This document shows positions 4,576 through 22,900 of a stretch of DNA of 23,706 bases, one piece after another. This stretch comes from Ginkgo biloba (lineage: Eukaryota > Plantae > Ginkgophyta). Numbering within the stretch: the first letter of the stretch is position 1; every line of letters starts with the position of its first letter. The notes beneath the pieces are model-generated. The model did no database searches and was not told the origin of the DNA. It was given only the letters and a program-made list of their open reading frames with translations. The stretch is from positions 90,527,062 to 90,550,767 of the forward strand of contig JANKJI020000004.1 of assembly GCA_024626585.2 (NCBI GenBank), given 5' to 3'. Position numbers and translations under genes: made by a program.

Positions 4576-4637
4576 TCTTTAAAGTTTAAAGTAGTTGATA
4601 AACTTTAAAAGTTATACTTAGCCAAAATTCTTGTCTC

Positions 4638-4875
4638 TGTCGGTCAAAGTCCAAGTCTGTGAAAGGCCAAGTCGGTGAGAAGGCAAGTCAGTGAAAGGCC
4701 AAGTCGGTGAAAGACCAAGTCGGTGAAAGGCCAAGTCGGTGAAAGACCAAGTCAGTGAAGACCAAAATGATGAAGTCGGTGAAGACCAGACTGACGAAGT
4801 CGGTAAAGGCTAAACCAATGGCATCCAGGAAAGCCAAACCGATGAGCCTTGTTAGTGGAAGCCAAACCGATGACC
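4638..4875 (+). repeat. Minisatellite: ~7-8 copies of the 16-bp unit CCAAGTCGGTGAAAGG grading into ~24-bp units (GAAGTCGGTGAAGACCARAMTGAY) and AAGCCAAACCGATG units
   Basis: Units are directly readable in the sequence. They explain the spurious repetitive ORFs 4688..4891 and 4752..4943. Confidence 0.9.
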
Positions 4876-4929: not shown

Positions 4930-5516
4930 GTATATTCTAACATCCAGATCCCTAATCCTCACAATGAAGGCGTGCAACTAGATTGCTGACTAGCTACCAC
5001 ACATAGCAAGAACCATTACTCACCAGATAACATTTGCCATTCAATGAATGTGTCAAAACTGATTCTGCTTGATTACTAATACTTGCAGAATCAAAAGTCA
5101 AAATCACTGTGTAAACGTTGGCATGATATGGGGCCCAAAAGCTTCCACAATCTATATGGTTGGCCCACTTGTAGAGACCAAAGGTCTTGAAGCTAAGAGA
5201 AGCTTGCCCATTTTCCCAAAGGATAATGGTTCAATCACAGATTTTGAAGATCTGTAGAAAGTTGGAAGTATTTGGGAGTAATCTGTGCTTTACATAGAAA
5301 GGCCATAAGTTTCAGAAGTTGGAAGAGTGTGAATGGGTTCAGACTTCATCACCAATTACTCCAGCAGCTTTTGAAAATGGCAACATAGCAGTGGGCCTCA
5401 AAAAGGTGCACCTTAGATGCTGGAAAATGATTAGATATATGAAGAAATCCAATTCGATTTGGACAGAACGAATGCCTTCATCATTACAACTCCAAAAGAG
5501 AATCTGTTGCCTATAG
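4930..5516 (+). pseudogene. Possible degraded leucine-rich-repeat (NLR-like) coding fragment
   Basis: The frame starting at 5091 reads ...QKLPQSIWLAHL*RPKVLKLREAC...LKICRKLEVF...FQKLEECEW...GLKKVHLRCW, resembling the NLR LRR pattern LxxLPxSIxxLxxLxxLxLxxC. In-frame stops are present. The resemblance is motif-level only. Confidence 0.35.
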
Positions 5517-6450
5517 TGCAGAAGATAGAGGTGATAGTGATAAGCCTGGTGGGTTAAATGCCACATTGCATGTTTTCTTTTATCATGAAAATAATGTCAC
5601 AACTACTAACAGTGCTAATAATTTATGTTATGATACACTGAATGAACAACTTATGAGGTAGAATTTTGTTTAGTACTTCCTATTATAGTGGTAAGATCTA
5701 TGAGATAGAATCAGAGTATGACTTAGAGGTAAGAGCCATACTTCTTTGTGCTCTTGGCACGAAGGATGGATCCTCGTACATAGTAGGGAAACTATACCAA
5801 AGACTTGCCATAGAGCCTAGAAGGGGTGAAAGATTCCCTTCGAAGAAAGTTGATTCATCTAGACCAAGGCAATGCCTAAGGCAAGATCTCAATCTACATT
5901 CAGAGGGACAAGATGAGATGGTGGAAATTAGTGACTAAGGGTATCAAGGTGGTAGCTATTTGAAATAATTATTGGCATGAGAGGACTTTTCACAACTATG
6001 TTTTTTCTAATTTTGGATGTGGAACCCTCAGAGGATTTTTATAAACTAATGTATGTTGTACATATTATTCATAATCCTACATTGTGTACGGATCCAAATT
6101 TTTATTTTTTGAGGAGCCACGCTGTTATATTACAATGTATTTTATCCTTTATGTGATATTAAAGTCTCATTTCTGAAAAATAAATAAATAAATAAATAAT
6201 ACTAATAATAATGTGATGGTTTGAAAAATAGTATGAGATTTTAATATAAATAATCAAGCATTTATTCTTTGGAGTTTGTCACCTATGTTCACATTTAAGA
6301 TTAAAAAAGATTAGAGCCTACTATGATTAGAATGGTTCTCTCACGCATAGAACACAACACAAAATTCGTTCCCTAAATTCAAAGGCTTAAATGTAGAAGT
6401 GCAACATTATATCGAACATTTCCTTTGAACACCACCCAATTATTTTTTAG

Positions 6451-6837
6451 GAAGATGTCTCGTTGGAAGGAGAGGAATGCCATATTTTCACCGAGAAACT
6501 GTTGTTGTATAATGAAATGCAAAAATTTTATTCAAAACCGTCGACGACAACTTTTCCAAAATCCACTGGGTATGTATAAATATTTTGAGTTCCACGTAAT
6601 CCTGCCAACATGGAGCGAGAAATTCAACCAACGTGGAGTAGATACCCTGTCCTAACGAAGCTCGAACGGAATGGACTTCCAAGCTCGCGTTGTAAATTAA
6701 AACTGCTTCTGGCTGATAGCTCCCAATGACATTTTATAAACATAACCACGATCAAGTTTGTTGTCCAGTGCGAACGCATGCACCGGTTAAATCTGGCGTG
6801 GTCCGTCGTCTGAGAATTGGTCGTTGTTGGCGGGGTC
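6451..6837 (-). mobile_element. Composite GH9-fragment-carrying repeat, copy 1 (truncated, CpG-intact) in the Gnk2-like upstream region
   Basis: Co-linear with 11318-11708 (e.g. gttgtaaattaaaactgcttctRgctgatagctcccaatgacattttata shared) and with the reverse complement of ~19650-19965. Minus strand 6835-6801 encodes PANNDQFSDDG, the tail of the GH9 exon. Confidence 0.85.
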
Positions 6838-7097
6838 AATATTTTTTTGAATAACACAGAGATTTGTTCAAATAATTAAAATTGGGTATCGATAATTGGT
6901 CGTTGTTGGCAGGGTCAATTTTTTTTGGAATAACACAGAGACTTGCTCAAATAATTAAAATTGGGTATCGATAAGACCGTGGATTTTGACGACTTTAATT
7001 TATATCCTTCTGTATGCTTTGATGCTTCATTAAATAATTTATATCAAATAATTTATAGCTTTCTGGATGCTTTGACCGTTCATTCAAACACGCCAAT
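6631..7097 (+). promoter_or_regulatory. Candidate cis-elements: ABRE-like ACGTGG (6631-6636), RY element CATGCA (6777-6782), W-boxes (6834-6839, 6913-6918, TTGACC 7072-7077), TGACG (6987-6991), CCAAT (7093-7097)
   Basis: Motifs seen directly upstream of the gene. Short motifs occur by chance, so function is inferred only from fit to a seed-expressed defence gene. Confidence 0.45.
6815..6974 (+). repeat. Tandem duplication, 2 x 79 bp, in the promoter; each unit contains a W-box (GGTCAA, 6834-6839 and 6913-6918)
   Basis: Unit 1 starts aattggtcgttgttggcggggtcaat at 6815, unit 2 aattggtcgttgttggcagggtcaat at 6894. Both end ...aataattaaaattgggtatcgat, with only a handful of mismatches. Confidence 0.95.
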
Positions 7098-7175
7098 TGA
7101 AACCATTCAGCTTTTAACCAAAGGACAGATATCATCTACCCATGGCTGGAAATCTCTCTCAACTCAATTCAGAGC

Positions 7176-7182
7176 TATAAAT
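7176..7182 (+). promoter_or_regulatory. TATA box (cTATAAAT); predicted TSS near 7206-7210 (TCACA initiator-like)
   Basis: Canonical plant TATA 93 bp upstream of the ATG, with a pyrimidine-A initiator ~30 bp downstream. Confidence 0.75.
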
Positions 7183-7268
7183 CATAGATGCCGCGAACGC
7201 TAGACTCACAAGAGCAATAGAAATCATAGTGCATATTAGTGAATAGTGCGTAAGAAATAGCAATAGTC

Positions 7269-7673
7269 ATGAAAACCATGAGAACGAATTCAACATTCAT
7301 TCTTACACTCGCATTGGCAGCAGCGATGCTCATAGTTACAGGAGCTGCCAATACAAACTTTGTCTCGTCTGCCTGCAACACGCAGAAAATTCCAAGCGGC
7401 AGCCCATTTAATACAAACCTGGGAGCGATGCTCGCAGATCTGAATCAAAACACTGCCTTCAGCGGTTACGATTACAAGACCTCCCGTTCAGGAATCGGAG
7501 GAGCACCCACTGCCTATGGACGGGCGACCTGTAAGCAGTCAATCTCTCAGTCTGATTGCACTGCTTGCCTCTCCAATCTCGTCAGCCGCATCTACTCTAT
7601 TTGCAACAACGCTATCGGTGCTCGTGTGCAGCTTGTCGACTGCTTCATCCAGTATGAGCAGAGTAGCTTCTAA
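7269..7673 (+). CDS. GNK2: Ginkbilobin-2-like secreted antifungal protein (single DUF26/Gnk2-homologous domain, Stress-antifung family), 134 aa, intronless; signal peptide approx. residues 1-26
   Basis: Hydrophobic N-terminal signal peptide, C-X8-C-X2-C motif ([13 protein letters not shown]), six Cys, C-terminal [14 protein letters not shown]. About 89% identical (15/134 differences) to Ginkgo Gnk2 as recalled from memory, so probably a paralog rather than Gnk2 itself. Flanked by TATA and AATAAA. Confidence 0.97.
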
Positions 7674-7735
7674 TCCTTTCTTCCATCTCTAGTCAGCAGG
7701 ACATAGTGTCCGATGATCTTACTACTTACCATTTC

Positions 7736-7741
7736 AATAAA
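7736..7741 (+). terminator. Putative polyadenylation signal AATAAA
   Basis: Lies 63 bp after the stop codon and is followed by T/GT-rich sequence. Confidence 0.55.
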
Positions 7742-9799
7742 ATTGGCACCGGCTCTACTGCCAGTCCGAGCTGCTTGGTGCCTTTTTATAAGCTATTATA
7801 GTTAGCCTTTTATGGGTTTCCGTTTACAAATGTGTGTGAAGAATTATTATCAATATGACTATGAAATGTATGATGTGCAATATGGCGTTAAATCAAAATG
7901 ATAGCTAATACATGGTTAAATCAAATTTCATATTTTATAGAGAAGTTGCATTTCCTTATAATTGCAAGACTAATAAAAATCTTGGTCTCAATTGGCTCAC
8001 CTAGCATCTATTTAAGGATAATACAAGTACATGAACATAGAATGTATTGGCAGCTAGTTTACAAGAATAGTTGTTGTAGATCTTTGTATAGAATATAGTG
8101 TTTTATTCCTTAATTTGAAATTTTTTTAACCATCATAATTTAGAAAAGCATTGTATTCAATAAGATAATTATTGTTGGAAAGATAGTTTTACAATATTTT
8201 GGACATATAATATGAACATTACATAATGTAGTAGATCTTAATGCACGTATGATATTCAATTAATTTGACACAAATTACTCAACATATTATCCTTTTTGTT
8301 CCCAAATGAAAGGAGTTTGAATAGTCAACAAATAAAACTTTATTTGAAAGAAAAAGCAATGCATGTTGTTGAGAGTTAAGATAGTTCAAGAAGATCAACT
8401 ACAATCCTTGGTCCAATTGCACTTATTTTAATCCCTTTCGAGGTATTATCATTAGATGAATGAACGAATATACATGAAATGAGTTATAGTCAACCTTCAC
8501 GCACTAGATTTAGAATTCTAATCTAACCAGTCAAATCTTTAGTAAAGTCAGTGCTAACACAACTGGCCTGGATGTAATCTTGTTTCTCTATTCCATATCT
8601 TCTATTTATGGCTTCACACAACCCATTATATTTTAATTTCACCCTCATGCCACTTGCATCAATCATTATTTTCCATCGTGATTGATCACCATATCATTCC
8701 ATCTATTGGCACGTTAGATTCTTTTGTGTTACACTTTCCAATGACCACCATTTTTAATTAAAGATTACACACCCTCTTCCGTGTCCTTTGAATCATCTTA
8801 ATCCTCATAATTTCGTAGGCCTTTCAATGTGTTCCAATACAATCCTAATGGTCATAGCACTTTAGTTATTTTCACACCAACTCTTTTTCATGATCACTCT
8901 TCTCTCTATAGTTAGTATTTGTAGTAGTCATTGTATTACCATGGCAAATCACCAAAGTGCCAATGATGAATTCTTTCTCCTGTATACGTCTTTGTGGGAT
9001 TCAAAGGAGCATGAACATAAACGTATCTGCTAGATTTAGAAGTCAAGGATGAGTTAGTTTTTATCGATAGTTTAGATGCTCAAATAGATTCCTTTGGCAA
9101 TTTAGAGGATTGGGACATAACAGACACGTTTGAATGAGAACTGGGAAAATTTTACTCGAACAAAGTTCTCTCAAATTTTTTTATTGCCCCGTCATCTATA
9201 CTTCCCATAGGTGGAATTAAGAAGGAAAGACACCTTAGATGACACTATGACTATTATCCCCAATGATATTTTCCATCCAACTTGGAAGGATGGCATAGGG
9301 AGTTTTGCGATTATGCTACAATGCCATGATAGTTAAGCTTTCCCTTGCTTGTTTTGTTCTATTGGAATATATCTCTCTCAACTCTATTTTTAAACTTTAG
9401 GCGTAGTTTTTTCTATAGTTTGTTATATATCTAGCTTTGTTTATGTTAGATGTACTCATACAAACTAGTTAATACTAGTTAAAAAAACCTCTAGTTATGG
9501 CATATAACACATTATGTAATATTGTGACATGCATAACATACATATGACTCTATAATCACCTTACTATTGATATTAAAAAAAAAATCACATAATATAATAG
9601 AACATAATTCATATTACTTATAGAACATAATAGAACATAATTTGGGATGGCAAAAAGTTTTAACATCCTATGAACTCTCTATTTCTCAAAATATATTACC
9701 TATAGAATCTAAGTATAATTTTTGTGCATGTATATATCAAATCAAAATCTATAAAACATTTAAAACCACCACACACACACAGACACCTACTCACATTTA

Positions 9800-9924: not shown

Positions 9925-10354
9925 NNNNNNNNNNNNNNNNNNNNNNNNNNNNNNNNNNNNNNNNNNNNNNNNNNNNNNNNNNNNNNNNNNNNNNNNNNNN
10001 NNNNNNNNNNNNNNNNNNNNNNNNTAGTTACTGAGGTAAATTTATGTAATGCTTGCTAAAGACAATGCTTGCACTATTGAAAGAATGGGAGTTGGTGGAC
10101 ATAAAGTTACATAAAATGATGATACTATTTTAGAACCTTCAATTCTATATCAACATACTTGCAAATAATATTGAGTTGAACACGTTAAACTAGGATTTTC
10201 AAGAAGGTGATTGAACATCACTTCAATTCATCATATTTTAGATGCATACTAGTCATTACCCATGGTAAATAGTTGCCATGGGTCCCATCCCTCTATTTGT
10301 ATTCCGTTCCCCTTTTCCCATTTCACGTTCTTCCATTTTTTGTTGTTTTACCTC

Positions 10355-10503
10355 GCATATCATGGGAATGCTTGCACAAAAAATCTTAAGTGTAGAGTTC
10401 CATCTGCTATGAGTAAGAAATCCTCCCATAGATGGGTGAAAAAGAACCTTTGTTTAAGGGGCCCAACCCACAAAGAAACTGCAATTTTTTGTTGTAATAA
10501 ATT
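10355..10503 (-). pseudogene. UDP-glycosyltransferase PSPG-box fragment, copy A (premature stop: [27 protein letters not shown])
   Basis: Near-identical to 12534-12680; the CAA (Gln) codon of WAPQ is TAA here. Confidence 0.85.
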
Positions 10504-10575
10504 GCATCAAATTACCTCACATCCTTATAATGCCATAATCTACTACACTTTCAAGGTTCCTCACACAATTCCTCA

Positions 10576-10822
10576 GTTACCACAATTGGCATAAAGCATC
10601 TCATCTAAACATATCTCCTCCAGAACCGTCACCACAATTGGCATTAATCGATACTCAACCTCAAAATAGTAGAACATCTAAACTCTACATTGTTCCTCCA
10701 GAATAATCACTACGATTGGTATAAAGCATCTAAGCTCAACATAGCTTGTCTAGAGTAGTCACCATGATTTCCATAAAGCTTCTCAAATCAACATATCTTG
10801 TCCATAACAATCACCACGATTG
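10576..10822. repeat. ~52-bp minisatellite inside Helitron copy A
   Basis: Recurring gtcaccacgattggcataaagcatctca... units, same organisation as 13079-13325. Confidence 0.85.
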
Positions 10823-11671
10823 AGCTTCATGTCATCTGAGATAAAAATATGATTGAGTGGAGCTTGCTAACAGATGCACCAATTACAATTGGACCATTTC
10901 ATAAAAAATATAACTTGACATGCCAACTACAACTAGACCATTAACATTGCATGGGATGACTACATTATTCTATTATATTTTACTCTTTTAGATTATTAAC
11001 CTCACACTCGAATTTTATTGGTGACTCCATTATTTTATTATTTTATAGAGTTATGGTCAATAAAATCATGCATTCCTAAAACATTCCTTATATTTTTTCA
11101 TTTATAAAATCTCTAAATTGAGTTCGCAAGCACATGCAAAGTGTTTTTAGTGATGAGTAAGAACATCAAGGAAAAACATAGGGAAGATTAACCTTACCCC
11201 TCCAAGAAACCAAGCAAGCAAGAAGCTAATTACTTGTAGTATATGAATCCAATTAAACACTATTAAATAACTTGGAGATTAGTATTGCATTGACTAAACA
11301 ACAGTGAAAATAAAAATGAAGACGTGTCATTACCTGATGTTGCAAAGAAAGGAGCGTCATATTTTCACTAAGAAGATGTTGTTGTAGAATTAAATGCCAA
11401 AATTTTATTCCAAACCTTTAAACGACAACTTTTTCAAATTCTAGTAGATATGTTATTCAACTTTTATAATGTAGAGAATAGATTTTGAGTTCCACACAAT
11501 CCTACGAACATGGAGTGAGGAATTTAACTAACATGGAGTAGATGCCCTATTAGAATGAAGCTTGATCAAAATGGACTTCTAAGCTCATGTTGTAAATTAA
11601 AACTGCTTCTAGCTGATAGCTCCCAATGACATTTTATAGACATAATCGCGATGACGTTAGGTGTATGTTTG

Positions 11672-11881
11672 GTCCACTATTTGAGAATTGGTCATTTTTG
11701 TTGGAGTCTCTTATGACTTCACCAATCAGCATGTTTGGGTTTAGACATTTGTTGATATGACAGATGTTGGACTATAGACGCTAAGGCAGAGCCTCTATGA
11801 TAGACTTGCTATGCAATCCTTGGCCCATAACCCACCATGTATGACATCCTCTTTAGGTTATCTTCCCAATATGTAGTCAAC
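11672..11881 (-). pseudogene. Glycoside hydrolase family 9 (endo-1,4-beta-glucanase) terminal-exon fragment with frameshifts and a stop
   Basis: Minus strand: ttgatttggcAG|VDYILG(fs)DNLKRMSYMVGYGPRIA*QVYHRGSALASIVQH...LNPNMLIGEVIRDSNKNDQFSN. This matches plant GH9 QVDYILGxNPxxMSYMVGYGxxxPxxxHHRGSS...PNPNxLxGAVVGGPxxxDxFxD. Confidence 0.92.
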
Positions 11882-12533
11882 CTGCCAAATCAAAATTTAT
11901 TTCTATGAAGATATTCTTAAGGCTTTAGCTATAAGCGTATAAGAGGCATTCACCAAGGTTTAACACCAAATATTATTGTGATGGTCGTCATATATTAGAT
12001 GTTCTTTATATAAATTATGTAAGAAGCATTGATAAAGAATGATGTTTTAAGCTATATAAGTTTATACTTAGAATATATTGATAAATTCACAAATGATGTT
12101 TATTTATGGATGGATAATTTTTCTACAAGATAGAGGGTTAAAAAATTTAATAGAGGCATTTTAATTCACTAAATTAGACATTTTAAAGATTGAATGATTT
12201 CGATAGTTACTGAGGTAAATTTATGTAATTCGTGCTAAAGACAATGCTTGCACTATTGAAAGAATGGGAGTTGGTGGACATAAAGTTACATAAAATGATG
12301 ATACTATTTTAGAACCTTCAATTCTATATCAACATACTTGCAAATAATATTGAGTTGAACACGTTAAACTAGGATTTTCAAGAAGGTGATTGAACATCAC
12401 TTCAATTCATCATATTTTAGATGCATACTAGTCATTACCCATGGTAAATAGTTGCCATGGGTCCCATCCCTCTATTTGTATTCCGTTCCCCTTTTCCCAT
12501 TTCACGTTCTTCCATTTTTTGTTGTTTTACCTC

Positions 12534-12695
12534 GCATATCATGGGAATGCTTGCACAAAAAATCTTAAGTGTAGAGTTCCATCTGCTATGAGTAAGAAAT
12601 CCTCCCACAGATGGGTGAAAAAGAACCTTTGTTTGAGGTGCCCAACCCACAAAGAAACTGTATTTTTTTGTTCTATTAAAAAATTGACGAGGGAC
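12534..12695 (-). pseudogene. UDP-glycosyltransferase (family 1) PSPG-box fragment, copy B, within ORF 12435..12764
   Basis: [54 protein letters not shown] matches the PSPG consensus [39 protein letters not shown]. It is truncated before WPxxxEQ. Confidence 0.92.
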
Positions 12696-13078
12696 AATCA
12701 TCGATATGATGAGGGAAAGATTCAAGAAATATGATGCAGGTAGTGCATCTGACAGACATATCAATGGTGAGCTGCATTTTAGCTACCTCTTTATTCTTTC
12801 TTTCTACACTTGGATGGTCTAAGTTATTTATATTTATGTATTTTCTATCTTCCAAGAGGGGGACGATATCTAAGAGGAGTTGGATTTAAGGTAAAACATG
12901 GGGGATTTTGCTCATATTAAGTGTGTTGTATATATTCACATATCACACTCAGTCAAATTTTTAAGAAAAAATCTCAATTTGTTTGAAGACCAAAAAAAAC
13001 TTAAGGGCATCGAATTACCTCACATCATCATAATGCCATAATCTACTGCGCTTTCAAGGTTCCACACACAATTCCTTA

Positions 13079-13325
13079 GTCACCACAATTGGCATAAAGC
13101 ATCTCATGTAAACATAACTCCTCTAGAACTGTCACCACTATTGGCATTAATCAATACTCAACCTCAAAATAATAGAACATCTCAACTCTACATAGTTCCT
13201 CCAGAACAGTCACCACGATTGGCATAAAGCATCTCAGCTCAATATAGCTCCTCTAGAGTAGTCACCATGATTGGCATAAAGCATCTCAATTCAACATATC
13301 TCCTCCGCAACAGTCACCACGATTG
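13079..13325. repeat. ~52-bp minisatellite (4+ units, one expanded to ~78 bp) inside the Helitron
   Basis: Units beginning gtcaccaYNattggcat at 13079, 13131, 13209, 13261 and a partial unit at 13313. Confidence 0.9.
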
Positions 13326-13493
13326 AGGTTCATGTCACTTGAGATAAAAATGTGATTGGGTGGAGCTTGCTAACAGATGCACCAACTACAACTGGACCAT
13401 TTAACAGAAAAAAAAACTTGACACGCTAACTGCAACTAGACCATTAACATTGGATGCGATGACTGCATTATTCTATTATATTTTACTCTTTTA

Positions 13494-13675
13494 GATTATT
13501 AACGTCACACTCGAATTTTATTGGTGACTCCATTATTTTATTAATTTTGGGGCTCGGGGTATTATTTTATTATTTTTATAGTGTTCTCGATTATTAACCT
13601 CATACTCGAATTTTATTAGTGACTCTATTATTATATTAATTTTGGGGCTCGTAGTATTATTATTTTATTATTTTG
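13494..13675. repeat. ~95-bp tandem duplication near the Helitron 5' end
   Basis: gattattaacStcaYactcgaattttattRgtgactc...aattttggggctcg occurs at 13494 and 13589. Confidence 0.85.
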
Positions 13676-15303
13676 AGCGGGCCAATATTTTTATAATTTT
13701 TACTGTCAGTTGAAGGAAATATTTTAGAAGTATGATATTTAAATGCTTAATAAGAGATTTTTAAGAGGCATATTTGGAAGAGGTACCATATACATATTTT
13801 CTTTCTCAAGGAGAGTAGAGCAATGGGATTTTGAGTTTGTTGATAGAGTAAACATAGAGCACACATTACATTTTGATGATATATCTTAATCGTAAAGAGT
13901 AGGTATAATTTGACTCTATATATCCCAGTAGTAAAGATTAGGATCATTAGATAATCACATTGCCTTGGGAAGGCCATTTATTACGAAGGTGACTAATTAT
14001 TTAGATGTAAGGTTTATATATTTACCTGTATTTAATGTTGTTATATTTTTTTTAAATTAAGATGTAAGGTTTATAGATCTTTAATATATTATTGTATATT
14101 CATAGTTGATGCAACCATGAAAAAGAATTCTTATTATTCTAGCAAGTATTGCAATTTGAAAGAGGCTTCTCAATGTTAAATAGGATTAAAAACATTGACA
14201 AATCAAGATTTTTTTTATTGAATACATTAGACATGCATATGCTTCTATATCTCTTTGTAAACCTAATGCATTACATGAGCATTACATGAGGTAGATTAGG
14301 GTCAAATTTAAAAGGCTTGTCAATGGATGAAAACTACAAAGCCTCTTCCATCACGTTAATATAAATATTATTTTAAATTATATGTAAGTTTTAAGATTTT
14401 AAAACAAATATAGAGGGAGCTTCAAAAACCATGTCTTTATAATTAGTCTTTAGTGAGTTAATTCTAATGTTTTTAATATTGTCAAATATAACAANNNNNN
14501 NNNNNNNNNNNNNNNNNNNNNNNNNNNNNNNNNNNNNNNNNNNNNNNNNNNNNNNNNNNNNNNNNNNNNNNNNNNNNNNNNNNNNNNNNNNNNNTAATTG
14601 ATGGTTGAGGTATCTTGGTAATGGGGACACCTATGCTTCCTTGGTAATGGGGGAAGTCTATTGGACCACTATTTTGAGGAGGTATCTCTCAGTTGAATAG
14701 AGAGAGAGTCCTAGTGCCTAAAGGTAGACCTTAGCACTCTTCTAGTTATAGGGGTGTGGACTTATGATGATGGGGTCGAGGGTGAACCTTTATGGTGCCC
14801 AAGGTTTGGTTGGCAGTTTTGGTGAATTCCTCTAGGAGTTTATCATCCTCATGCCCAAAAGTGGTGTATCTTATTCATAACAGTCCTACATTGGAGTTTA
14901 TCAGTGAGTCACGATTGATGCATTAGGGTTTATACATTTGAATATGATTATGTTTGATGATTTGACTCATGAAATTAGACTTTGTAAATCAATTTTATTC
15001 GATGTGCTTATTTATATGAATATATACAATGATAAAGATAATGGTTATGCTTTATTATGGAAAGTTTTATATAAATTGATAACCAAAGTTGCAGGCTTAA
15101 GGTGGGGGTTGTTACATTTTGGATCCTCTTATCTTTTTTAATTCCAGTAGTTTAATTTCCTTTTCCTAATTCCAATTTTTCTCTTCTCAAAAGGGGAGTA
15201 CTTAGGATGGAATAAGATATATGTTATCCAAGGGAATAATTACATATTTCATGAGCAATTTTATTGTGAGTTCTTTGTCCATGTAATAGGCAAAGGCCTA
15301 CAA

Positions 15304-15630
15304 TTTTCTAAGTTCTCACCTATGATTCTACCAAGGGGCAGTTAGCAAAGTATTGAGGGAGCGGGTCACTTATAATATTCTCTTCACCAGGCATTATCCT
15401 GTGAATTTCTAGGTTCTCACCTATGATATCACCAAGGGTCACTAGCAAATTATTGAGGTAGTGGCTCACTTGTGATGTTCTCTCCACCAAGCATCAGCCT
15501 GTGACTTCTAGGTTCTCATATGCGATTTCACTAAGGGGTAGCTAGCAAAGTCTTGAGGCAGTGGCTCACTTGTGATCTTCTCTTCATCAGGCATCAACAT
15601 GTGACTTTCTAGGTACCCACCTATGATGTA
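15304..15630. repeat. ~100-bp tandem repeat, ~3.3 diverged copies before a gap
   Basis: ttctaRgtWc units at 15306, 15407, 15506 and 15607 with shared tagcaaa...ttgagg...tcactt cores. Confidence 0.9.
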
Positions 15631-15759
15631 ACCAACCAGACGCTTGGGATACCANNNNNNNNNNNNNNNNNNNNNNNNNNNNNNNNNNNNNNNNNNNNNN
15701 NNNNNNNNNNNNNNNNNNNNNNNNNNNNNNNNNNNNNNNNNNNNNNNNNNNNNNAGATA

Positions 15760-18014: not shown

Positions 18015-19970
18015 TCATTACAAAAATATGGTTTTTTCAATCAAAACCATAATTTTTTGATATATTTAAAAATATTAAAACTTACATATCATTTAAAATA
18101 TTGTCTATATTAACTTGATGGAGGAGGTTTTGGATTTTTCATCCATTGCCAAGCCTCATAAATTTGTCCCTAATATGCCTTATGTAATGCATGATGTACA
18201 CAAATAGAGATAGATGCATGTCTAAAGTATTAAACAAAAACTTGAATTTTCAACATTTTTAATCCTCTTTAGCTTTGAGAAGCCTCTTTCATATATTGCA
18301 ATACTTTCTTGAATAATAAGAATATTGTTTCATGGTTGTATCAACTATGAATATCCAATAATGTATTCTAAATCATCTCTACATTATTCCCATGCTCAAA
18401 GAATATACTTTTTAAGATATGAACCATAAAGAGAAACAACAATCCCATCTATTTCACCCATGCATATGGTATTATCAACTATTAGGTAGTGTCCAACATC
18501 AAACTTTCCATACATATATAAGAAGTGAGAACCATTCATATGTTTGACATTCTATTTTATTCACCTCCTCAAAATAATCATGAAGAAAAAAAATTAAGTG
18601 CATTAAATATACGTAAATATATGAACCTTACATCTATATAATTAGTCACCTTCGTAATAAATATCCTTCCCAAGGAAATGTATCATCCAATGCTCATAAT
18701 ATTCATGAATAGGATATATAGCTTCAAATTGTAGCTAATCTTTATGAGTGGTAATATAGCCTCAAATTATAATGTGTCTACTATATTTACTCTATCAACA
18801 AAATCAAAAGTCCCTTGATCTAATCTCCTTAAAAAATAATACATGTATATGGTACCTCTTCCAAATATGCCTCCTAAAAATATCTTATTAAGAATTTAAA
18901 TACCTACATCTAAAATATGATGAATTGAAGTGATGTTAAATCATCTTCTTGAAACTCCTAGTATAACATGTTCAATTCAATAATATTTTCAAATACATTA
19001 ATATAGAATTGAAAGTTTTAAAATATTATCACCATTTTATGTAACTTTGTGTCCACCAACTCCCATTCTTTTAATAGTGCAAGTATTATATTTAGTAAGC
19101 ATTACATAAATTTACCTTGTCAACTATCTAAATTAGTGAATATGCATAACCTATAACTTAGAGAATTGAAATGCCTCTATCAAAAATTTTAAACTCTCTA
19201 TGTCTTATAGAAAATTTATTCATCCATAAATAAACATTGTTTATGATCTTATTGATCAATAAATTCTAAGTATAAATTTAAATAGATTAAAATATCATTT
19301 ATTATCAATGCTTTTTACATAAATTATACAGTGAATATCTGTTATGTGAGGGCAATTAAGACAATATTTATTTATTAAACATTGGTGAATTACTCTTCTA
19401 GGATTATAGCTAAAGCCTTAAAAATACCTAAATAAAATGTATCTTGATTTGGCAGGATGACCACATACTAGGAGAAAACCTAAGGAATATGTCATATGTG
19501 GGGTTATGGGCAAAGGATTCCATATCATGTCCATCATAAAGGCTCATCCTTGTCATCTATAGTCCAACATCCATAATTCATTTCATCATTCCCTCTACAA
19601 TAGTTCTCTAAACCCAAACATTCTAGTTGGAGCAGTCATTGGAGGCCCCAACAACATAACAATTCTTAGACAATGGACTACACTAGGCATAATAGGTATG
19701 TGCATTCACACTAAACACCTAACACTATCGTAGTTATATCTCTCAAACATCATTAGGAGATATCAACTAGAAGTCATTTTTATTTACAACATGATATTGG
19801 AAGTCCATTCTATTTAATCTTCATTCTTATAGGGAATCTACTCCACATTCGTCAAATGCCTTGATCCATGTTGGAAGGATTATGTGGAGCTCCAAAAAAA
19901 TGCATGTTTCACTTTCAAAAATTTGAATAACATATCTAGTGGAATTTGGGAAAGTTATCACTCGATGAAT
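18015..19970 (+). mobile_element. Composite GH9-fragment-carrying repeat, copy 3 (inverted relative to copies 1 and 2; no Helitron insertion; cut by an LTR element)
   Basis: Reverse complement aligns to ~11420-12427 plus 13736-14445 (e.g. tatatggtacctcttccaaatatgcctc; tgtccaccaactcccattcttt). Confidence 0.85.
19456..19677 (+). pseudogene. GH9 endoglucanase terminal-exon fragment, copy 3
   Basis: ttgatttggcAG|[15 protein letters not shown](fs)[24 protein letters not shown]...(fs)LNPNILVGAVIGGPNN...QFLDN. Confidence 0.92.
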
Positions 19971-22900
19971 GTTTTTGTGTAAATGAACAATAAGGGTTAA
20001 AAACCACATTTATGGCCTTAACTATCCCCAACATAAATCTCCCTTAATAAAATTCAAAATAAGGGTCAAATAGGATTAAGAAAATCCCCAAAATAAGGTT
20101 CCCTAACTTAATGGGCACTTAGAGTCATTATAAGTGAGATGGATCCTACATTTGAAGAGTTGTGACCCTTGGAGTAAGATGTCCAATTTCTAAACTATAT
20201 AAAGGCATTTTCCCCTCATTTCTTCTAACACATTCAAGAATTCATTATTATTTTTTATTCTAATTGTGAGAAACTATATTTTAGGAGAGTATTTCTCCTC
20301 TCTTCTACATAGAAATTCATAGTATTTGGACCCTTTTCTACTTAGAAGCAAAGTGCTTATTCTTCTCCCTGGTTAGTAGAGTGTTATCTCTCTCTTGATA
20401 TTTATATTAAATTATTGTGGATTTGTGACATTGATGTTGGATTTATTATACAAATACTCTATGATTATTACTATAACTATGATTTGTATATCATTTTGAT
20501 CAATGTTTGTTGTTATTTTTTAACTTTTAACATAATAAGTGGATCAGAGTTGAGTTCCTTCTCTTAATGAAGAGTGACTGAAGTATATTCAATTCATCAT
20601 TGTTTAAGACATAATTATACATAATTATTTTTAGATTCAGATAATTTAGATTGATCTATGTAGTTTAAAAAAAAGAAGTGTCTGATTGGGAGTTTGAAAG
20701 TTCCCAAAAAGTGCATTTAAAGTTGGGATAAATTCAAGTCATTTTTTAAGCTATTTGGTAGGCAATGTGCAAAATTTATAAGTTTAGGTGAATAATTTGG
20801 AAAATTTAGGGAGTATTTTTATACATTCAGAAATTACACATCTTCCCACATAGTTTCAAGGGAAATTTAGAGATATTTGGGTTCTAAACAAGGTTGAAAA
20901 ACTCATCAAAAGATAAGATGAGGTTTTAAAGTTATTTCTAGGGTACTAAAAGTAATTAATGGCACCAAAGTCATAAATTTATGAAATATTTTTTCATATT
21001 AAGAAATTACATATTTTTATACCCCAAATTCATATAAGGAGCATCAGAATTAGCCATTATATGACTCTGTAATTTATCCTAGAAGATAGGGTAAAATTTA
21101 AAGCTAAAATTAGGGTTTCAACCAGAGGTGATTGAATCTAAGGTATTTTTTCCTATTATTATTTTAAAATTTTCAAAAAAATTATAATTTTTATAATTGT
21201 TGGTATCTTATAGTTAAGTCGAATAAAATTTGAGATCAATTGTCTTTGGAAAGTATCTTTAACACTACAATCAAGTTAGGGTGTGATTTAAAGATAATGT
21301 CGAAGATAACTCCAAAAAGGTGATCAGATCATAGCCTTTAAGGAGAAAGCATGAAGATCTTGTTTTACTCATTTGAAGGAAAAATAACACTAGAAAAATG
21401 GTTTAAAATCTTTCTAGAATAATTATTCAATTATATTAGACTCCAAGATGAAAGGAGAAAGACATTGGCAATAATTTAGTCACCTTAAAGTTTAAGCTTA
21501 TATAGGGAAAAATGGATATGTAAACATTGGCATAAAAACTATCCATGGGATTTACTTGAGGACTTAAATAAGGAATTAGAGTTTGAGTAAAGTCAATACT
21601 ATAAAATGAAGAATTCATTTAGAGTAGTAGGACTTGAAGAAATTGACAATAAAAAGGAAGATTCGACCATTGAAGTGTCCTCTCTAGAATAAGAGTTTAG
21701 ATGAAGGGTTCAATAAACTTGCAGTAAAAAATGAATACATCGTAGAGGCTACCACTNNNNNNNNNNNNNNNNNNNNNNNNNNNNNNNNNNNNNNNNNNNN
21801 NNNNNNNNNNNNNNNNNNNNNNNNNNNNNNNNNNNNNNNNNNNNNNNNNNNNNNNNCATTGGGCTATTTGTTTTTAAGTAAGAGTTGATTCCACCTTGAT
21901 TAATGAGTATAGAGTATCATATGAGTCTAATTTTGTCCATTGGCCATTTAGCTCACCCATGATGAAATTGGGTCATTTACCATGGTGAAAGTCATAACTC
22001 TTCACCAATTAGTGTAACCATAGGATACACATGATTCAAAATGAAGCCACCAATTATATTGACCTCCTTCTTCTATATTTGTATTGTTGATTAATTACGT
22101 CAATGACCTCAAACCATAGAACCTCATATTATATCTATTATAATGGTACCATTATTATCTTCCTTATCAAGAATAAGATGATAAAGACCATATAAACATC
22201 CTCTTATATAGATACTATAATACTTCTAATAATAATTATTGATTCAAGATGAAGGATAGGAACCTTACCATAAAATAATACTAAGGAAGAAGATAAATTT
22301 GAATATGAAGAAATGGACCATGAAGATAATTATATGACAAAAATTATTATAATCCTAGCTTGTATGACAATACTAAGGATGACCCTCTTGATGGAGATGA
22401 AGAACCTAAACACTCTGAATAGGTAAAGTTTGGAAAAGAAAGTGACTCAAAATATTGAGAACCTAGAGAAGTGATTGAAGATGAAGAACTGGATGAAAAC
22501 ATCTAAGAGGAAGATCCTTCCGATGAAGAAGAACTAGATGAAGAAGAGTTGGCATACCCTCCTGATAAAAAAATAAGACCACTCAAAGAGGATGAGCAAC
22601 AAGAAAAAATTAAAGAACCAAGAAAAGATGAATAATTAAATATTGATGATGAGGATTTGGACAAATATTTTTATTCTAAAGGAGGTCGTAATGGATATCC
22701 AAATGAAGAACTACATAAAGATGATGATAGGGATGAAGATTATGATGACGACAAGGGTGATGATGACAAAGATTATTGTGAAGAAAAATATTATGATCCT
22801 GATGAACCTAAGGATACCATAAGTNNNNNNNNNNNNNNNNNNNNNNNNNNNNNNNNNNNNNNNNNNNNNAACCCTTGACACAATTAGATTATTCTGAAGA

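Follow-up and report, generated by a model that had tools for sequence, protein, structure and literature searches.

A repeat fragment upstream of a Ginkgo biloba Gnk2 paralog has kept its CpGs and is probably sheltered within a gene-proximal unmethylated region

Methylated CpGs decay to TpG/CpA, while unmethylated promoter-proximal DNA stays at a CpG o/e near 1. Genes and regulatory space in plants are marked by stable unmethylated regions; in maize, an overlap with transposable elements is seen for 18.8% of such regions (10.1101/2020.05.21.109744). In the methylome of Chinese pine, a conifer, methylation in all contexts falls sharply at gene starts and ends (PMC10082083). The same logic applies to vertebrate CpG islands and to repeats that retain CpGs in places of germ-line hypomethylation, where dispersed repeat copies serve as internal controls (for context, PMC12582260; 10.64898/2026.06.15.732472). 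As reported in PMC12582260, transposable elements are hardly ever found in vertebrate islands with a transcription start.

The window analysed here is a stretch of 23,706 nucleotides (23.7 kb) from Ginkgo biloba, and it offers a natural experiment: three copies of one sequence occur within 14 kb, of which one lies inside the CpG-preserved zone of a gene and two lie outside. The locus resembles the unmethylated regions of maize in that a block of about 1.3 kb, made up of promoter and gene, lies between flanks with the signature of heavy methylation, and in that repeat-derived sequence is included in the block. It differs from them in that the host is a gymnosperm whose genome is very large (10 Gb in Ginkgo), and in that the Ginkgo state is read solely from the CpG/CHG footprint against sister copies. 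Compared with vertebrate CpG islands, the system is a plant one in which the CHG context also counts, the Ginkgo island is short and its GC content is modest (0.33-0.49); unlike vertebrate islands with a transcription start, it has a repeat fragment as its outer third. The locus also recalls transposable-element-derived cis-regulatory elements and the ABRE pairs and RY elements of seed genes, with repeat DNA that contains two ACGT-core words less than 50 bp apart and one CATGCA. In contrast to those systems, the Ginkgo motifs appear to be ancestral to the repeat and lack conservation in the promoters of homologs, only part of the RY word is present and no constraint is apparent.

The gene in question is an intact, intronless Gnk2 (ginkbilobin-2) paralog at 7269-7673 on the forward strand, with a DUF26/Stress-antifung domain (PF01657, E 4e-15 in a Pfam profile search); its product is a secreted DUF26 protein of 134 amino acids. 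This protein shares 89-91% identity with Gnk2 proteins already known from Ginkgo biloba, those compared being A4ZDL6/Gb_24476, Gb_21398, Gb_24478, Gb_07036 and Gnk2-1, all EukProt entries that give protein only. Exact look-ups of the window's Gnk2 protein and of Gb_21398 matched no record. Seeds are the source from which Gnk2 was isolated, and its conifer relatives are embryo-abundant proteins, as names in the database matches also indicate. A TATA-like word, CTATAAAT, can be read at 7175-7182 on the forward strand, 93 bp before the ATG. The repeat fragment at 6451-6837 lies 430-820 bp upstream of the ATG and would be roughly 340-730 bp upstream of this putative TATA word. Among words sampled from 6300-7800, fractions of 0.79-0.98 occur in 14 DNA-like contig sets from six studies; in six small sets of contigs that are putatively RNA the fraction is 0.14-0.27, which is about the share of the coding sequence.

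CpGs are preserved in an island-like domain at 6451-7770 that comprises the Gnk2 paralog and its promoter, of which the repeat fragment is a part. CpG density at 6451-7700 is 4.24 per 100 bp, against 0.3-1.4 elsewhere and about 1 in the flanks. The three CpG-richest 400-bp windows of the 23.7 kb all fall within 6401-7000, and the last closely spaced CpG of the domain is at 7767. Upstream of the domain the CpG o/e is 0.25 (5300-6161) and 0.56 (6215-6450). It then rises to 1.21 in the fragment, stands at 0.91 in the non-repeat promoter (6838-7268, with a 79-bp tandem duplication included) and at 0.84 in the coding sequence (7269-7673), and falls to 0.39-0.42 downstream (7674-9780), the value for the whole window being 0.31. 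The stretch 6451-7700 is thus a discrete block of the kind expected of an unmethylated region, with an o/e of 0.84-1.21 against 0.25-0.56 in its flanks. The CpG richness that the initial annotation reported for 6451-6837 is real but is not confined to that segment, since the zone runs from 6451 to about 7770. The left edge of the CpG-rich zone is also the left edge of the repeat (6451), a coincidence that would fit a fragment arriving already CpG-rich as well. Elsewhere in the window, at 4623-4775, about nine head-to-tail 16-bp units (GTCGGTGAAAGGCCAA-like) with one CpG each form a small CpG-bearing patch directly past a scaffold gap.

The fragment (hereafter the promoter copy) is a truncated piece, 387 bases long, of a repeat of about 2 kb, and it contains 22 CpGs. 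Sibling copy 2 of the same segment lies at 11318-11700 on the forward strand, at the start of the repeat formed by 11318-12423 and 13719-14445, and has 7 CpGs; sibling copy 3 lies at 19648-19960 on the reverse strand, at the end of the inverted repeat 18015-19970, and has 2-3 CpGs. Comparison of the window with itself, with 6162-6214 masked, revealed the full unit of about 2 kb, in which 11318-12423 plus 13719-14445 corresponds to 19970-18015 reversed. Copy 2 is split by a nested insert (12424-13718) that carries a UGT PSPG piece (PF00201, E 2e-8). The promoter copy is about 73-79% identical to its siblings. A blastn search of the upstream region against the window matched 6462-6764 to 11339-11664 at 76.7% with gaps and 6583-6830 to 19896-19648 on the reverse strand at 72.7%, while ungapped blocks found between the repeat copies by the repeat search reach 82-84%. 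Pairwise K2P distances among the three copies are 0.25-0.36, and the promoter copy has two deletions, of 22 bp and 10 bp, relative to its siblings. Together, blastn and the three-way alignment confirm the earlier proposal that 6451-6837 is a truncated copy of the repeat seen at 11318-14445 and 18015-19970.

In the three-way alignment the likeness between the promoter copy and copy 2 starts at 6451/11318 and is clear by 6462/11339, and the DNA farther upstream is unrelated. Because this left boundary is identical in both, the two copies descend from one unit and not from two separate samplings of a parent gene. The right ends of the repeat copies fade without a sharp edge, and no terminal inverted repeat was found that links 11318 with about 14445. 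A hAT-like look of ERGFSMLNRIKN (14143-14286) was considered and dropped, as it was without Pfam support. A word search with the 83-amino-acid open frame of the fragment yielded zero candidates, and a metagenome scan with a degenerate 24-mer derived from the repeat found no hits.

Two adjacent pieces of copy 3, searched apart and not joined over frameshifts, match positions 370-416 of the Glyco_hydro_9 profile below threshold (Pfam, E 0.0045 and 0.008). Read on the minus strand, the segment would represent the end of a GH9-like last exon and its 3' flank, of which the promoter copy, ending within the exon, would contain at most the decayed tail of the exon. Of the gene fragments ascribed to the repeat, a GH9 piece (below threshold) is indicated in copy 3 and a UGT piece in the insert of copy 2; the frames of the promoter copy, like those of the DNA upstream, have no Pfam match. 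Apart from the three copies, the region 10025-11044 compares with 12204-13547 in a 477-bp block of 98% identity and a 541-bp block of 90% identity. These blocks duplicate part of copy 2 together with its UGT-bearing nested insert, and they begin right at a 100-N scaffold gap (9925-10024); they may stem from a local duplication of recent date or from an artefact of assembly. At 15288-15641 there are 3-4 copies of a tandem repeat of about 100 bp (75-85% identity), with a scaffold gap at the end.

Comparison of the three copies revealed a strong asymmetry in CpG content that is accompanied by the same trend at CHG sites. The promoter copy, with its 22 CpGs at an o/e of 1.21, has a CAG/CTG o/e of 0.97. 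The corresponding values are 7 CpGs, 0.56 and 0.42 for copy 2 (counted over 11308-11760) and 3 CpGs, 0.28 and 0.0 for copy 3 (counted over 19620-19990). The word pairs listed in the initial annotation are all seven present in the alignment with the 11318 copy (ccgagaa/ctaagaa, tccacgt/tccacac, ggagcgag/ggagtgag, aacgtgg/aacatgg, aacgaag/aatgaag, ctcgaacgg/cttgatcaa and ctcgcgtt/ctcatgtt). At two sites (6616 and 6632) the siblings differ from each other, TG standing against CA, and at four (6663, 6667, 6797 and 6807) they have undergone double hits (TA, TT). Such patterns require an ancestral CG, since single transitions yield them only from CG. Among 16 inferred ancestral CpGs, the promoter copy retains 14, copy 2 retains 4 and copy 3 retains 1 (Fisher P=0.001 and 7e-6 for the promoter copy against the two siblings).

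Within the part aligned in all three copies, 26 differences are unique to the promoter copy; 17 of these set a C/G in the promoter copy against T/A in both siblings, and 2 are of the opposite kind. By context, the 17 sites comprise 11 CG, 4 CHG and 2 CHH. The comparison covers the three copies in the window and is unrooted, and at the six CpG sites with the same TG or CA in both siblings, as well as at the 4 CHG and 2 CHH sites, we infer the direction of change. Losses at CG/CHG sites kept by both other copies number 0 in the promoter copy, 5 in copy 2 and 9 in copy 3. Sequence comparison thus supports the claim that the promoter copy escaped CpG decay, and hence that it has probably long been unmethylated, unlike its siblings.

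The escape need not be complete. At 6456, 6478 and 6747 a CG of copy 2 faces TG/CA in the promoter copy, which may have lost as many as three CpGs at these sites; its o/e of 1.21 leaves no room for net CpG depletion. Positions 6456 and 6478 are the only sites with CG in copy 2 and TG in the promoter copy where just these two copies align, and both lie less than 30 bp from the outer edge of the fragment. This pattern could look as if methylation had encroached slightly from the flank, and it could equally represent gains in copy 2. A capture-recapture estimate from the promoter copy and copy 2 gave about 48 ancestral CpGs and was rejected as unrealistic, the CpGs present only in copy 2 being as few as ordinary gains predict. 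As for the rest of copy 3 (18015-19647), it has 2 CpGs in 1633 bp (o/e 0.07; CAG/CTG o/e 0.19), and the matching part of copy 2 is far more mildly depleted (o/e 0.41). Copies 2 and 3 appear to have had very different decay histories.

Analysis of homologous loci revealed a similar island at Gnk2-like genes on metagenome contigs of gymnosperm-like nuclear DNA, clearest in three of them (L001, L003 and L008), where an o/e of about 1 extends from about -600 or farther upstream into the gene. The L001 contig has values of 0.9-1.2 over the stretch that begins at about -600 and includes the gene; most of its other bins have 0-0.45. Downstream it is about 0.2-0.6 in L001 and L003, whose contigs extend past the gene, and farther upstream it is lower again in L001 and L008. 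In each of the three contigs the gene occupies an island about 1.1 kb long; that of L001 (800-1900 of contig Ga0643154_010359, JGI metagenome 3300072920) has strongly CpG-depleted DNA on both sides, and a reverse-transcriptase gene follows about 2.8 kb downstream. Alignment of the promoter with that of the conifer-like L001 gave no match, the coding sequence alone being alignable (77.6% over 326 bp). Judging from these sequences, a CpG-preserved block of 1.1-1.3 kb that spans promoter and gene looks like a habit of the family.

Overall, our analysis suggests that the retention of CpGs is probably due to passive inclusion of the fragment in a stable unmethylated gene-proximal region. Together with about 0.8 kb of upstream DNA, the Gnk2 paralog would constitute one region long free of germ-line CG methylation, and CHG methylation is probably missing from the same region. 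The outer 387 bp of this region would be an old fragment of a repeat that was dispersed or duplicated, presumably the tail of a GH9 pseudo-exon with its 3' flank. The cytosines of the fragment, unmethylated there, would have been spared the fast transitions from 5mC to T, while the siblings in methylated intergenic DNA would have been stripped of CpG and CHG. The fragment would then be shielded by the unmethylated zone of the gene, and a function of its own would not be needed for the retention. The CpG-rich zone exceeds the repeat, and for this reason the site is a better explanation than the fragment itself. The unmethylated state, the residence of the fragment in place for the whole period and its lack of function are all points that we infer from sequence.

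Three other explanations have to be weighed against passive inclusion. A gain of CpGs in the promoter copy, for example through GC-biased gene conversion at a recombination-prone promoter, would account for the asymmetry without loss in the siblings. GC is in fact higher in the promoter copy (0.42-0.43) than in the siblings (0.33-0.34), and parsimony alone cannot separate gain from loss where both siblings share one state. We nevertheless consider such a gain highly improbable. Sites with C/G in the promoter copy only make up 11 of 40 CpG-making positions and 6 of 98 other A/T positions (27.5% vs 6.1%; odds ratio 5.8, Fisher P=0.0012), and this concentration, which a general AT-to-GC bias does not predict, argues against a uniform bias of that kind in the promoter copy. 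The TG/CA splits and double hits demand an ancestral CG, and the unique changes of the siblings are largely C-to-T and G-to-A (10 of 19 and 15 of 35). Among the 11 CpG sites, true gains in the promoter copy could amount to about 2-3, as expected from the background rate, the others being losses in the sibling lineages. The shared left edge at 6451, with an o/e of 0.56 and then 0.25 in the DNA just upstream, raises another possibility, namely that a CpG-preserving lineage sat elsewhere, for instance as an unmethylated source copy, and was only recently placed upstream of Gnk2. In that event the CpG richness would say little about methylation at the Gnk2 site. A younger arrival is unlikely, since a tandem duplication took in the end of the fragment and its units have diverged from each other since then. 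The duplication lies at 6812-6969 on the forward strand, and its first 79-bp unit (6812-6890) opens with the last 26 bp of the fragment; the second unit occupies 6891-6969. The units show 6 differences in 84 positions (K2P 0.075), which, set against the 0.25-0.36 between the repeat copies, implies a residence of the fragment that spans no less than about a quarter of the divergence time, a calibration with only 6 differences behind it. Furthermore, the adjacent non-repeat promoter and the coding sequence are CpG-preserved and a similar island occurs at the homologs, so that the site alone suffices, and a recent arrival needs the extra assumption of a source copy that was unmethylated throughout the divergence time.

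The third alternative is exaptation, in which the fragment would be a working upstream module of the Gnk2 paralog. Its inverted ACGTGG pair, with or without the CATGCA, would bind ABA and seed-maturation factors (bZIP/ABI5-type and B3/ABI3-type), and factor occupancy or selection would preserve both the unmethylated state and the words. The initial annotation had mentioned an ABRE-like ACGTGG that is missing in the siblings; it is indeed missing there, but the fragment has two such words and not one. The first lies at 6592-6597 on the reverse strand (CCACAC and CCACAT in the siblings), and the second at 6631-6636 on the forward strand (ACATGG and ATGTGG in the siblings). The two words are 39 bp apart and inverted, they are the only ACGTGG words in the window, and no other ACGT core is present between 6215 and 8244. 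Their isolation, their absence from both siblings and the seed and embryo associations of Gnk2 and its conifer relatives speak for exaptation, as does the low probability (about 0.02, from a local first-order model and with the motif picked post hoc) of finding at least two ACGTGG words. The words are candidate sites that may be bound by bZIP factors; in full they read ACGTGGA, and their flanks are not of the strong ACGTGGC/ACGTGTC form. Both appear to be ancestral to the repeat and erased in the siblings by CpG decay. Since nearly all CpGs were kept (about 14 of 16), the retention of the two words calls for no special explanation, and the ACGT count of the fragment is as expected (2 vs 1.94). 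The RY element that was also reported is present as the six-base core CATGCA at 6777-6782 on the forward strand, in the context GCATGCAC, but the full RY word CATGCATG is absent at this position. The window contains CATGCA 24 times where 10 occurrences are expected (P=0.15 for one in the segment), and the presence of the word in the fragment is at background frequency and unremarkable. No ABRE pair was found at the eight homologous loci (L001-L009), several of which have less than 550 bp upstream; single ABRE-like words occur upstream of only two of the eight, L001 (-461) and L008 (-828), and ABRE-like and RY words are sporadic there and not conserved. The non-CpG rate points the same way, as changes outside the C-to-T class number 9-11 on the promoter branch, 9 on that of copy 2 and 20 on that of copy 3, with no apparent sign of constraint, and the fragment has suffered its 22-bp and 10-bp deletions relative to the siblings. 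On these grounds exaptation is rather improbable, and control by seed-maturation factors, as put forward earlier, is not supported by the motifs or by the pattern of substitution. Its most specific form appears quite improbable: an ABA- and seed-responsive module recruited from a GH9 3' region, with the inverted ACGTGGA pair bound by bZIP factors whose occupancy would set the outer boundary of the unmethylated domain and confer paralog-specific expression.

Passive inclusion in the unmethylated zone of the gene is consistent with established knowledge. No new mechanism is revealed by this analysis, as unmethylated gene-proximal regions, repeats within them and methylation-driven CpG decay are already established. 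Beyond what had been noticed before, this study adds that CHG sites follow the same trend as CpG sites, that the island exceeds the fragment and that homologous genes have a similar island. The case would thus be one of a known phenomenon, a repeat fragment shielded in the unmethylated region of a gene, in a giant gymnosperm genome. It suggests that the footprint of long-term germ-line methylation is legible from sequence, at CpG and probably at CHG, and that a promoter-proximal zone may shield the repeat DNA within it. Such footprints may be of use in flagging candidate regulatory space in very large genomes for which methylomes are lacking.
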